A DNA stretch of 64,000 bases from Macrostomum lignano. Taxonomy: Eukaryota. The notes under the pieces are model-generated. The model saw nothing but the letters and a program-made list of their open reading frames with translations, searched no databases and was not told the DNA's origin. Shown here piece after piece: positions 53,901 to 57,910 of this stretch. Both the position numbers and the translations under genes were made by a program. Within the stretch, counting starts at the first letter, position 1. Each line of letters opens with the position of its first letter. The stretch lies in contig NIVC01000082.1 in NCBI GenBank assembly GCA_002269645.1, positions 62,001 through 126,000 on the forward strand, written 5' to 3'.

Positions 53901-56900
53901 AAATAATTAGCACAAAATAGCAGGCTTAATAAAAGCACAAGAAAAAATCTCTATTATACTCTTCATATTCCCCAGAAGACAATGATTAGCTGTACCAGTG
54001 TTGTGCAGGTAAAACGGTTGCACTGTTCCATTCGGGCAGGTGAATGGCAACTTCGATGGTGAGAACGAGAAAAATAGTAAGCAACTGCAGATGGTCTCTC
54101 CGTGAGTCCATGACAGCGAGTTGTTTGCCACTCCCGTGTTGATTTGCGCTGCAAATTGTAAGCGGAGTTCACATAAACAAAACAGATTTTGGGTCAAACT
54201 AATACCCTATCAAGTTTGCCTAACTTGCAGCAGCAGTGTTGCTACAGAACTCTAGCTACCCTCCACTCAGACTAGCTACCCTCCACTCAGACTAGCTACC
54301 CTCCACTCAGACTAGCTACCCTCTACTCAGACTAGCTACCCTCCACTCAGACTAATTAGACTAGCTACCCTCCACTCAGACTAGCTACCCTCCGCTCAGA
54401 CTAGCTACCCTCTACTAGCCCCTCCACTCAGACTAGCTACCCTCCACTCAGACTCTAGACTACTACCCTCCACTCAGACTAGCTACCCTCGACTCAGACT
54501 AGCTGCCCTCTATTCAGACTAGCTACCCATCATGGACCCACCAGCACAATTGACTCACGGGTAGCGACGAATCGAACTCCGCTGACAGGCACAGTGACAT
54601 TGAAGGTCGAATAGTGCACCTGGCTGGTTGAGCTGCCGCACTTCGAGCCGTTGGTCACCGGGCAGGTCAGAGGACAGTCGGCTATGGATGTCACACTGCT
54701 GGCGTTCAGACTGTCGCTGCACAGACAGAACTTGTCGTTTACGAAGGCGTAGCTGCAGAGAGTTGCAAGAGATTGGAACGTTTGTTACCTGTACGAGCTT
54801 TTTCTGTTGTTTCATCCATGCATCTAATGGTCTATCTATCTATCTATCTATCTATCTATCTATCTATCTATCTATCTATCTATCTATCTATCTATCTATC
54901 TATCTATCTATCTATCTATCTATCTATCTATCTATCTATCTATCTATCTATCTATCTATCTATCTATCTATCTATCTATCTATCTATCTATCTATCTATC
55001 TATCTATCTATCTATCTATCTATCTATCTATCTATCTATCTATCTATCTATCTATCTATCTATCTATCTATCTATCTATCTATCTATCTATCTATCTATC
55101 TATCTATCTATCTATCTATCTATCTATCTATCTATCTATCTATCTATCTATCTATCTATCTATCTATCTATCTATCTATCTATCTATCTATCTATCTATC
55201 TATCTATCTATCTATCTATCTATCTATCTATCTATCTATCTATCTATCTATCTATCTATCTATCTATCTATCTATCTATCTATCTATCTATCTATCTATC
55301 TATCTATCTATCTATCTATCTATCTATCTATCTATCTATCTATCTATCTATCTATCTATCTATCTATCTATCTATCTATCTATCTATCTATCTATCTATC
55401 TATCTATCTATCTATCTATCTATCTATCTATCTATCTATCTATCTATCTATCTATCTATCTATCTATCTATCTATCTATCTATCTATCTATCTATCTATC
55501 TATCTATCTATCTATCTATCTATCTATCTATCTATCTATCTATCTATCTATCTATCTATCTATCTATCTATCTATCTATCTATCTATCTATCTATCTATC
55601 TAGCAACCAATCAGTCAGTCAATCAGTTAATCTATCTATCAATCAGTCAGTCAGTTAATCAATCAGTCAGACAATCAATCAACCAGTCAATCAATCAATC
55701 AATCAATCGATCAATCAGTGAACCAATCAATCAGTGAATCAATCAATCAATGAATCAATCAATCTATCAATCAATCAGTCAATCAATCAATCAGTCAGTC
55801 AATCAATCAGTCAGTTAATCAGTCATTCAATCACCTGGGCGGCGGCCGGATCCTGCTACACTCGTAGCGGCACACCCTGGCATCAACGGTGCTGTTAGAC
55901 AGGTACAGTCCGGGATTCTTTCTGGCCGGTCGGTAGTTGGGGGGCATCAGGCTGCACTGCTCAGCCGACACTGCGAGGTTTTGCGAGATTTTTTTGCTTT
56001 TTTAGGTTCAAAGATGCAAGGATAAAACGGTCTGACGGATGGCTGACACAAAATTTAGTCTATTCTACTCTTACAAATCTATTCTACTCTTCCAAATCTA
56101 TTCTACTCTTCCAAATCTATTCTACTCTTCCAAATCTATTCTACTCTTCCAAGTCTATTCTACTCTTCCAAATCTATTCTACTCTTCCAAATCTATTCTA
56201 CTCTTCCAAATCTATTCTACTCTTCCAAATCTATTCTACTCTGCAGATTCTATTCTACTCTACTGAGTCCATTCTACTCTGCTGACTGTATTCTACTCTG
56301 CTGACTGTATTCTACTCTGCCGACTGTATTCTACTCTGCTGACTGTATTCTACTCTGCAGATTCTATTCTAATCTGCAGATTCTATTCTACTCTGCAGAT
56401 TCTATTCTACTCTGCAGATTCTATTCTACTCTGCAGATTCTATTCTACTCTGCAGATTCTATTCTACTCTGCAGATTCTATTCTGCTGACTGTATTCTAT
56501 ACGTCTAGTTCCCCGCTAGAAGAAGCAATTTGCAATTGTTTGCGTCACCTTGGACTAGGGGTGTTCGGGTCGGCCATTTTTTCGGGGTTCGGGGTTTACC
56601 CCGAACCCGGTACCCCTACCCCGAACACCGAACCCCGTCCCGAACATTTCTTCTAACCCCGAACCCCGAACCCGGTACCAAAACCCGACCCGACCCCGAA
56701 CGTAACCCCGAACATTTTCACGCTTATTTTGGTCAATCATTTTAATAAATTCAGTTTTCAGTTTTCAATTTTTCAGTTTTCAGTTTTCAATTTCAGTTTT
56801 AAATTCAGTTTTATATATTGAGATGTGCCTTAACAGCTTCAACCACTTAGCCTTGTGGTTTTATTTCCCTTAGCTACTCTACAACTAGGAAAATAAATAT

Positions 56901-57910
56901 GAAACACTTCTTGCAATGGGATTGGGATTGAGATGGAAGGAATACCAAGACCCAAGATCTAATAGTACGATACATGAAAGTTCACAACTAAAATCAGGAC
57001 CATTTCGTACCTATACTTACAACGAAATTGCTTTCATAGTAATATTACATCTATGAGTTTATTTAAGCTGCAAAAATAGAGTACAATAAAATTAGATTAT
57101 ACCCTATAGTGTAGATATCAGTAGAGATAGAACTAGAGCGATAAAGAGATAGCACAGATAAAACAATGATACAATGAAACAGGAGAGTTAATCACAAATA
57201 TATATTTATTTTTACTTTTGACTACAGTTAACAGTAAGTCAGTAGTGGTATAACAGAATTGCTATGTAAAAACTAAAGTGACGTCTTTACATAAAATTGT
57301 ATGCTGATATGAGTAGGTAATCATTGTGATAATTGATTATTGGCGACTGATGCGTGGAGAATAATGGTGTATTTATAAATTTTAAGCTTCCTCATCCAAT
57401 CCAGAAGTTCAGACCATGTTACACGTAGCACATGTAAAATTATTACTGAACGTAATTTTTTAAATCATCAACTGCAAGACTGAATGGGTCGAAAAACGAC
57501 AATCGTTATTTACCAGAAAGTGTAAATGAATCCATGGTTCTATCTGCTATTTCCGTTTCAAATTGTATGTAAAATATAACTTAATTTGTACCTGAAACTC
57601 AATGCATATCTTTCGCATTGTGGATTTTGCATAAGGAGTAAAAAGTGCTTGAAAATACTCTTGAGAATGATAATTGTTCAAAACCCCGAAAACCCCGAAA
57701 ACCCGGTGGCCAAACCCGACCCGAACCCCGAACCCGGTACCCCTACCCCGAACCCCGAACCCGACCCGGAACACCTACCCCGAACCCCGAACCCGGTACC
57801 AAAACCCGACCCGAAACCCGACCCGACCCCGAACCCCGAACACCCCTACCTTGGACAGTCAGGCTGCAGGCCAGCAGAAGCAGAAATGCCAGCAGTTTTG
57901 GCAGCTTCAT
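32902..57910 (-). CDS. PKD1L-like: Polycystin-1-like (PKD1L2-type) receptor/channel: SP-WSC-PKD repeats-F5/8C-PKD-REJ-GAIN/GPS-PLAT-TOP/PKD channel-coiled coil, ~3860 aa
   Basis: Hand-spliced exons: 57910-57850, 55970-55835, 54752-54559, 54148-53996, 53897-53670, 53469-53306, 52987-52282, 51944-51751, 51669-51561, 50649-50581, 49936-49881, 49785-49743 (weak acceptor, uncertain), 47964-47866, 47766-47596, 46782-46523, 46154-46019, 45932-43310, 42617-42334, 41759-41424, 41285-40446, 40164-39858, 39246-39072, 38954-38567 (1 nt short), 38388-38124, 38028-37426, 37298-36921, 36699-34572, 34086-33814, 33113-32902. Motifs: signal peptide [43 protein letters not shown]5/8[89 protein letters not shown]. 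Confidence 0.88.
33199..33700. repeat. 45-bp minisatellite in the last PKD intron
   Basis: Unit GTCATATGTTACACAGACATTGAAGGTCAAAGGTGATCATGTTGA. Confidence 0.94.
34167..34447. repeat. 47-bp minisatellite, 6 copies, PKD intron
   Basis: Unit CACCTCACTCCTCGGCTCAGCCAATAGCGATCTCTGAAACTCCTACC. Confidence 0.95.
46843..47525. repeat. 12-bp CCAGTCTGTCTT repeat, PKD intron
   Basis: Direct reading. Confidence 0.95.
48249..48504 (+). mobile_element. CORE-like SINE, family B
   Basis: GGGGTTGTAGCCTAGTGGTTAGAGC (A box), GGTTCGATTC (B box), CCTTGAGCAAGACACTTCACTCTGCATTGCTTCAGTTCACCCAGCTGTAAAATGGG, AT-rich tail. Confidence 0.87.
48538..49122. mobile_element. MITE-like element with inverted subterminal repeats
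   Basis: 48545-48573 is the exact reverse complement of 48970-48998 (29 bp). The right side carries further TTTCGGTCTTGTGAA units. GGGT...ACCC ends; TSD not resolved. Confidence 0.6.
49947..50571. repeat. (GACA)n filling a PKD intron
   Basis: Direct reading. Confidence 0.98.
50965..50978. promoter_or_regulatory. Perfect RFX X-box palindrome GTTGCCATGGCAAC (intronic)
   Basis: Exact match to the canonical 14-bp X-box. Function not shown. Confidence 0.55.
52015..52265. repeat. ~50-60-bp degenerate repeat, PKD intron
   Basis: Recurring CAATGTACACTCGGGCAGGGACGAGA...GGGTGAGG. Confidence 0.8.
53486..53665. repeat. 53-bp repeat, ~3.4 copies, PKD intron
   Basis: Units start at 53486, 53539, 53592 and 53645. 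Confidence 0.92.
54252..54528. repeat. 20-bp CTAGCTACCCTCCACTCAGA repeat
   Basis: Direct reading. Confidence 0.94.
54829..55830. repeat. (TATC)n followed by degenerate (AATC/AGTC)n
   Basis: Direct reading. Confidence 0.98.
56055..56500. repeat. 19-bp TATTCTACTCT-core minisatellite
   Basis: Three successive variants: CCAAATCTATTCTACTCTT, ...CTGCTGACTG and ...CTGCAGATTC. Confidence 0.92.
56556..57848. mobile_element. Non-autonomous hAT-type element, 1293 bp, 14-bp TIR, 8-bp TSD, inserted at the PKD exon 1/intron 1 junction
   Basis: TIR TAGGGGTGTTCGGG / CCCGAACACCCCTA. TSD CCTTGGAC at 56548-56555 and 57849-57856. CCCGAA-rich subterminal repeats, AT-rich core, no transposase. Confidence 0.92.

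Follow-up and report, generated by a model that had tools for sequence, protein, structure and literature searches.

Can a cut-and-paste transposon land on the very nucleotide that a splice donor depends on and still leave the intron and the protein in place? This question is raised by a stretch of 64,000 nucleotides from the flatworm Macrostomum lignano (GenBank assembly GCA_002269645.1, contig NIVC01000082.1, positions 62,001 to 126,000; hereafter the window), in which a 1293-bp element sits at the end of the first coding exon of a polycystin-1/REJ-like gene, BOX15_Mlig009397g2. A preliminary description of this sequence had presented the element as a hAT transposon whose target-site duplication (TSD) and terminal inverted repeat (TIR) together rebuild a donor and give GT...AG ends, and had suggested that its family could generate introns in the manner of introner elements. 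Our analysis leads to a plainer reading, to which we assign a probability of about 0.75: an ordinary, recent insertion into one of three gene copies, after which the donor was rebuilt and is used.

The ends of the element define the insertion precisely. Its TIR arms are 14 bp long, read TAGGGGTGTTCGGG and are complementary at 14 of 14 positions, that is, perfect and without mutation. The exact sequence occurs twice in the window, as the two arms; at up to two mismatches, three matches are found in the 64 kb where 0.21 would be expected, a count reached in none of 100 shuffles. Outside the arms stand two copies of the octamer GTCCAAGG, identical at all eight positions and likewise free of mutation; for one fixed pair of 8-mers, identity by chance has a probability of 4^-8. 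On the minus strand, which is that of the gene, the left junction (57862-57833) passes from exon 1, ending in CTGACTGTCCAAG at 57850, into GTAGGGGTGTTCGGGG; the right junction (56569-56541) passes from CCCGAACACCCCTA (ending at 56556) through a G and TCCAAG (56554-56549) into GTGACGCA from 56548. The preliminary description had placed the element, its TIR and its TSD correctly to the base. The other three matches to GTCCAAGG in the window fall inside copies of a dispersed repeat of ~150-230 bp, present in at least four copies at 80-92% identity (58546-58758, 17480-17708, 48252-48405 and 63040-63124); ARAGORN found no tRNA-like part in this repeat.

Two empty sites in the same assembly establish what stood here before. 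Locus L001, which is 100% identical to window positions 28333-64000 in reverse orientation and extends 3.9 kb beyond the window, holds the upstream neighbor gene Mlig016203g2 (PAA91644.1, 505 aa, L001:2317-3834). This neighbor has two paralogues on other contigs, g3 (PAA91624.1) on NIVC01000083.1 (locus L019) and g1 (PAA65614.1) on NIVC01001635.1 (locus L020), and both loci reach into a paralogous polycystin-like gene. We considered whether the suffix '.g2' denotes the second gene of a transcriptional unit and rejected this, as g1, g2 and g3 of the neighbor sit on three different contigs. Exon 1 lies at 19196-19256 in L019, followed by GTGACGCAAACAATTGC, and at 18188-18248 in L020, where it carries one substitution (T/A in ATGAAGC[T/A]G; MKQPK) and is followed by the same GTGACGCAAACAATTGC. 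Both loci lack the element and read CTGACTGTCCAAGGTGACGCAAAC at the site, parsed as CTGACT-GTCCAAGG-TGACGC, with a single GTCCAAGG directly before TGACGCAAACAATTGC. The acceptor CGCAG^TGTCGG (the caret marks the splice junction) and exon 2 are common to the filled locus, L019 and L020. The 1293-bp element is thus a genuine insertion with an 8-bp TSD and, because there are two empty sites, intron 1 and its donor G^GTGACG are older than the insertion, which in turn is younger than the split of the copies. The empty-site sequence GTCCAAG^GTGACG, foreseen in the preliminary description, is present in both paralogues, and the same sites rule out that the element itself created intron 1.

The identity of L020 with the filled locus amounts to 99.07% across 3.1 kb upstream, and each flank of the insertion runs colinear with the paralogues. 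Together with the perfect TIR and TSD, this identity points to a recent event. When the three copies are compared (L019 19186-21515, L020 18178-21451 and window 53996-57910), exons 1 and 2 of the window and L019 prove 100% identical, and L020 differs at one site in exon 1 and at two G/A sites in exon 2. Judged from sequence, the comparison suggests three mosaic copies shaped by recombination or gene conversion between homeologues. In exon 3, the window is near-identical to L020, but a comparison with L019 gives 8 differences in 139 nt. In exon 4, identity between L020 and the window drops to 87%, and L020 there matches UniRef A0A1I8HJP7. In L019, the (GATA)n array of intron 2 also holds a non-repeat stretch of ~160 bp (20262-20420), which is found in this copy alone and may be another small insertion.

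The insertion site explains how a donor could be lost and regained in one step. The GT of the new donor consists of the last base of the TSD (G, 57849) and the first base of the TIR (T, 57848), as had been described. We propose that a young, non-autonomous hAT-type element inserted into one of three paralogous copies of the gene in neopolyploid M. lignano, and that the staggered 8-bp target cut spanned the last 7 nt of exon 1 and the G of the pre-existing donor (GTCCAAG^G). Gap repair would then have left an upstream TSD copy ending in G in front of an element starting with T, so that exon 1 again precedes a GT (AAG^GTAGGG). Intron 1, grown from 578 to 1879 nt, thereby took in the element together with the downstream TSD copy and the displaced donor, and the enlarged intron would keep its old acceptor and leave mRNA and protein unchanged. 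GT...AG ends are a generic outcome of TAG...CTA termini meeting a G......G target. On this proposal, the element would be passive cargo of the intron and not its creator.

The annotated gene model uses the new donor. The product PAA91643.1 ('hypothetical protein BOX15_Mlig009397g2', 2568 aa) is encoded on NIVC01000082.1 of GCA_002269645.1 (Mlig_3_7). Used as a protein query, the largest open exon on the minus strand of the gene (43309-45954) retrieved a 100% identical M. lignano protein, in a cluster with PAA91643.1; the 181-aa N-terminus, used in the same way, gave no match, and the representative of the 90% cluster is without the N-terminus. An exact alignment of PAA91643.1 to the minus strand, with introns restricted to GT/GC..AG, yields 23 exons from 57910 to 38333, in which all introns are GT-AG and all exons are open and exactly colinear with the product. 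Position 57850 is joined directly to 55970, giving the N-terminus MKLPK...LTVQ^VSAEQ. The GenBank annotation is based on RNA-seq, with StringTie and TACO applied to mapped reads and BLAT-mapped de novo transcripts added (PMC5730564). Because it derives from RNA-seq, exon 57910-57850 is, at the level of annotation, the transcribed first coding exon. The preliminary description had expected this exon to be the first and the protein to be left intact, and the annotated protein agrees with it on both points. Its expectation that splicing runs from the new donor straight to exon 2 is matched by the annotated model, although, with exons 1 and 2 identical in L019, the junction is not specific to this copy. 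We infer that the filled copy is itself transcribed and spliced at the new donor. If translation ran on from exon 1 into the element, it would meet a stop after 55 codons (ORF, open reading frame, 57743-57910), and a functional product of the filled copy therefore needs that donor.

At the far end of the element, an AG is formed in the same way, from the last TIR base (56556) and the first TSD base (56555). The preliminary description had seen in it an acceptor by which the element could be removed as its own intron, leaving 6 nt and a duplicated VQ. The AG is real, and retention of the 6-nt piece would indeed be translated in frame as LTVQVQVSAEQ; the AG is, however, unused, and the microexon does not appear in the annotated model. 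We rejected the VQVQ isoform: it would need a sub-threshold acceptor followed by an exon of 6 nt, and no protein carrying VQVQ was found. Each of the gene's 22 real acceptors (3.7-14.8 bits) outscores the latent one, which ranks 13th of the 152 AGs in intron 1.

For the donors, we built a position weight matrix from the other 21 donors of the gene (consensus GTRAGT, with A at +4 and G at +5 in 19 of 21 each), which themselves score 2.7-11.6 bits, mostly 6-11. The exchange of donors lost the A at +4 and gained the G at +5, and the new and old sites are of similar, weak strength. The first 180 nt of the new intron hold 22 runs of at least three Gs, where nearly every other intron of the gene has 0-3. 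In vertebrates, runs of this kind enhance the use of an upstream donor. The coordinates of all features, with scores where splice sites are concerned, are collected in Table 1.

Table 1. Positions (window coordinates) of the insertion, the splice signals at its borders and the host gene
Feature	Position	Strand	Remarks
Non-autonomous hAT-like element	56556..57848	.	1293 bp, without long ORF; absent from paralogous loci L019 and L020
TIR arm adjoining exon 1	57835..57848	-	Reads TAGGGGTGTTCGGG on the minus strand; first T completes the new GT donor
TIR, distal arm	56556..56569	+	TAGGGGTGTTCGGG on the plus strand, ...CCCGAACACCCCTA on the minus strand
TSD, upstream copy GTCCAAGG	57849..57856	-	Last 7 nt of exon 1 plus donor G(+1)
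TSD, downstream copy GTCCAAGG	56548..56555	-	First G completes the latent AG; last G is that of the displaced original donor
Subterminal repeat array 1	57680..57834	-	TTCGGG / GGGTTCGGGG units
Subterminal repeat array 2	56570..56720	-	Units mostly oriented as in array 1; 3 inverted CCCGAA units in last 40 nt
New 5' splice site AAG^GTAGGG at TSD/TIR junction	57844..57852	-	Used by the annotated model; 3.2 bits
Displaced original 5' splice site AAG^GTGACG	56543..56551	-	Now within intron 1; donor in the empty paralogues; 3.9 bits
Latent AG (cccctAG^TCC) at element end	56555..56556	-	Unused in the annotated model; 3.3 bits
Host gene BOX15_Mlig009397g2	38333..57910	-	23 coding exons, 2568 aa; PKD repeats and F5/8 type C domain
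Exon 1, coding part	57850..57910	-	ATG plus 20 codons (signal-peptide-like) plus 1 nt; annotated coding start of PAA91643.1, exact spliced alignment
Intron 1 as annotated	55971..57849	-	1879 nt, GT..AG; element, right TSD and old 578-nt intron with 19-mer tandem array
Exon 2	55835..55970	-	Start of weak WSC-like Cys-rich domain (VSAEQCSL...)

Several structural features place the element among the hAT transposons. The duplication is 8 bp long and was found on both flanks, with one copy of the octamer in each of the two empty paralogues. The TIR is short, and its start fits YARNG, the consensus start of hAT TIRs. Arrays of short repeats, putative transposase-binding sites, lie within ~200 bp of the ends: 18 TTCGGG units on the sense strand of the gene are spread over two subterminal regions of ~170 nt each, none falls beyond the terminal regions, and three inverted CCCGAA units occupy the last 40 nt of the element. 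Positions 57777-57834 recur as an 88% direct repeat within the distal array, 56570-56720. The hAT target consensus nTnnnnAn is weak in many hAT families; the target GTCCAAGG has T at position 2 and G at position 7, and so matches half of this palindromic consensus. The first five TIR bases, TAGGG, are those of the Ac/Ds ends C/TAGGGATGAAA (PMC3260210). The GC content is 39% for the whole element and 31% in its 960-bp core, which is without a meaningful ORF. With its 8-bp TSD, TAGGG... ends and subterminal hexamer arrays, the element appears by structure to be of non-autonomous hAT type, as the preliminary description had it, and was probably mobilized through its subterminal TTCGGG repeats by a hAT transposase. 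A miniature inverted-repeat transposable element (MITE) in the strict sense is shorter than ~800 bp and present in high copy number; at 1293 bp, this one is better called a non-autonomous hAT-N element.

A search for relatives returned no further copy or fragment elsewhere in the window, in the 3.9 kb that L001 adds to it or in the 43 kb of L019 and L020, ~111 kb of M. lignano DNA in total (BLAST and TIR search). The element contains an ORF of 75 aa, for which an exact look-up gave no protein on record and an exhaustive HMMER search against 1.84 billion representatives gave one match, to its low-complexity Gly/Arg part alone. In metagenomes, a scan for the TIR plus TTCGGGG returned 17 loci, which is estimated to be about the chance level, and BLAST and inspection showed these to be unrelated prokaryote-like sequences. 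One of the metagenome contigs (Ga0136656_1008666, locus L008, 2867-3024) holds a palindrome of ~160 bp made of GTTCGGGG-like units and ending in TAGGGGTGTTCGGGGTTCGG, without a matching element; its likeness to the element end is probably due to chance or convergence.

Several observations weigh against our reading or against the working of the filled copy. No transposase partner was found: inspection by eye revealed no hAT-like ORF among the stop-free stretches of the window, and the Pfam scan covered ten selected products, with the ORFs of the element not among them. The annotated junction is no proof that the filled copy is spliced, because reads across the exon 1-exon 2 junction map to L019 as well, and 180 Mb of the assembly lie in blocks duplicated at 95% identity or more (PMC5730564). 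Both paralogues keep the empty site and uninterrupted exons 1 and 2 (coverage reaches exon 4 in L020 and the first part of exon 3 in L019); if they are intact overall, as we assume, selection on the filled copy is relaxed, and the persistence of the insertion is therefore no evidence for a working donor. Two empty-site loci could in this way shelter a defective filled copy. It is conceivable, though on balance we judge it unlikely, that the insertion is real and the filled copy hypomorphic or dead, surviving because the two empty-site copies may supply the function. The rebuilt GT would then be a coincidence, poorly used or not used at all, and the annotated junction would stem from reads of an empty paralogue. 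The signals at the site lend this some color: the new donor is weak (3.2 bits where the others mostly reach 6-11) and has a G at +4, seen in none of the other 21 donors (19 A, 2 C); the 14-bp TIR duplex (-27.5 kcal/mol) could form in the pre-mRNA and occlude the donor; and two stronger cryptic donors lie inside the element on the minus strand, CTG^GTAAAT at 57513 (6.9 bits) and GTT^GTAAGT at 57020 (6.1 bits), which could support exonization of element sequence if an upstream AG were used. Yet the original donor, at 3.9 bits, was equally weak and evidently worked; 23 of 23 exons are open and colinear with the 2568-aa product, with no sign of decay; and in the gene tables for the three loci, a PKD gene model is present at the filled locus alone, with none at L019 or L020 although exons 1-3 look intact there.

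The suggestion that this hAT family is an animal introner, whose exonic insertions are spliced out with an in-frame scar of +6 nt and which generates introns genome-wide, appears to us very improbable. It draws on the formation of GT and AG at the two junctions, on the in-frame length of the extra 6 nt and on precedent: TSD-derived splice sites and in-frame scars are documented, as in Aureococcus with an 8-bp TSD and a scar of +12 nt (PMC9860276), and of the introners that have been classified, ~82% are TIR DNA transposons (PMC12130899). An introner, however, places a new intron in a previously continuous exon, and here the empty paralogues already read exon 1 ^ GTGACG...intron...CGCAG ^ exon 2, so that the intron pre-existed and none was gained. 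The ends of the intron are not those of the element either: they coincide at the 5' side, whereas the annotated intron runs 585 nt past the element on the 3' side (56556 to 55971). Element and TSD complete the donor, but the AG at 56556-56555 is unused and scores under every real acceptor of the gene. No second copy turned up in the ~111 kb of M. lignano sequence, and Gozashti et al. (2022), who surveyed 3,325 genomes and found animal introners in two groups only, list Macrostomum_lignano with marine = 1 and ie = 0 (PMC9860276, Supplementary Table 4). At 1.3 kb, the element is also far longer than the reported families, whose median lengths are 30-654 nt (PMC9860276). The evidence thus favors a one-off coincidence, the outcome that the preliminary description had itself named as the one that would refute its proposal. 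An assembly or chimeric-read artefact, a concern raised by the absence of the element from the other two copies and by the high redundancy of the assembly, has no direct evidence in its favor; a perfect 8-bp TSD that exactly brackets perfect TIRs is a signature of transposition and not of misassembly, and with flanks colinear with the paralogues on both sides, such an artefact is next to impossible.

The insertion of a transposon at a donor, with the donor rebuilt from target and transposon, can be placed among several known systems. The introners of Micromonas, Aureococcus, Symbiodinium and others (Huff et al. 2016; Gozashti et al. 2022, 2025) are, like our element, non-autonomous TIR/TSD DNA transposons in which the TSD completes one splice-site dinucleotide (PMC9860276 Fig. 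2), and in both an in-frame scar is possible in principle; the M. lignano element differs in that no intron was created, the 3' boundary lies off the element, a single copy was seen, the host is scored as introner-free and the length is far greater. In the case of the MITE-derived non-canonical introns of the tunicate Fritillaria borealis, and of the Oikopleura introners, the host is likewise an animal and the ends of TIR elements lie at or near intron ends (PMC11282704), but there the element sets the limits of the intron, whose ends are often non-canonical and require an adapted spliceosome, unlike the GT..AG intron with its old acceptor described here.

A close parallel in element type is the maize Ac/Ds system. 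Ac/Ds elements, which are hAT transposons, share the 8-bp TSD, the termini TAGGG...CCCTA (C/TAGGGATGAAA...TTTCATCCCTA) and subterminal hexamer repeats within ~200 bp of each end (PMC3260210). Ds1 resembles our element in being non-autonomous and in sharing little beyond the ends. It differs in its host, its repeat (AAACGG, where the flatworm element has TTCGGG) and its length (~0.4 kb against 1.3 kb). Ds1 is reported to have behaved as an intron in Adh1-Fm335, in the work of Dennis and colleagues of 1988, and in wx alleles, as told by Wessler in 1991. It supplies donors and acceptors up to 35 nt from its ends, and splicing removes it from the transcripts of the host (PMC5432752). These Ds1 sites are internal and the element is spliced out of exons, whereas the M. 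lignano donor spans the TSD/TIR junction and belongs to a pre-existing intron. Ordinary intronic insertions of transposable elements near splice sites are alike in that the element is carried in the intron and the coding sequence is unchanged; they are unlike it in that the M. lignano insertion struck the exact donor nucleotide and produced a donor composed of target and transposon bases. This hybrid donor is unusual in its register, not in its kind. Maize Ds1 made known in 1988-1991 that hAT elements can behave as introns, and the formation of a splice site from a TSD and a terminal base is known as well; the locus is therefore a new instance of known things and not a new mechanism.

Some further features of the gene and its surroundings deserve mention. 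The product of exon 1 resembles a signal peptide, with cleavage likely after VSA, and the WSC-like domain match that follows has an E-value of 5.8e-4 and falls under Pfam's cut-off. An acceptor-like AG stands 4 nt upstream of the ATG (tcatattattgtccAG^CTAGATG, window 57911-57930, minus strand) and could be a spliced-leader trans-splice acceptor or the end of an intron in the 5' untranslated region; ~39% of M. lignano genes are trans-spliced (PMC5730564). Directly downstream of the annotated stop at 38333, ORFs with PLAT, Polycystin_dom and PKD_channel domains occupy window 33767-37968 on the minus strand, and the locus looks like a single polycystin-1/REJ-like gene, or a pair of a PKD1-like and a PKD2-like gene, that may have been split in the annotation. 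The window also holds, on the plus strand at 3445-9307, a TRPM-like channel gene with ankyrin repeats, a TRPM2-like domain and an ion-transport domain; between its exons, the ORF 7319-7726 encodes a helix-turn-helix domain such as transposases carry at their N-terminus. Long micro- and minisatellites fill the introns and intergenic DNA (54830-55600, 56059-56484, 49900-50560, 31260-32240, 28830-30200 and 61590-62150), among them ~0.8 kb of (GATA)n in intron 2, the array of 22 19-mer units in intron 1 and arrays of (CTGT)n type, and the lengths of the satellite arrays vary between the paralogues.

For the origin of introns, the locus leaves current views unchanged: the insertion added no intron, and nothing indicates repeated behavior of this kind by the family. 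We regard it as a long shot that this hAT family, with TAG...CTA ends and a bias toward, or a tolerance of, G......G targets, is able to sit in bilaterian coding sequence and be spliced out with a 6-nt in-frame scar; if this were so, new or remodeled flatworm introns would have a low-level source in hAT elements that has escaped notice until now, eased by neopolyploid redundancy. What the locus offers is a clean natural case, resolved by its paralogues, in which a cut-and-paste transposon hit a splice-site nucleotide and the signal survived, with the filled site and two empty sites within one assembly. It gives a single-base view of the chemistry of the introner model, in which a TSD base and a terminal base make a GT or an AG, here in an animal and with a hAT element, and its paralogue-specific single-nucleotide polymorphisms make it well suited to measuring the function of a hybrid donor in vivo.

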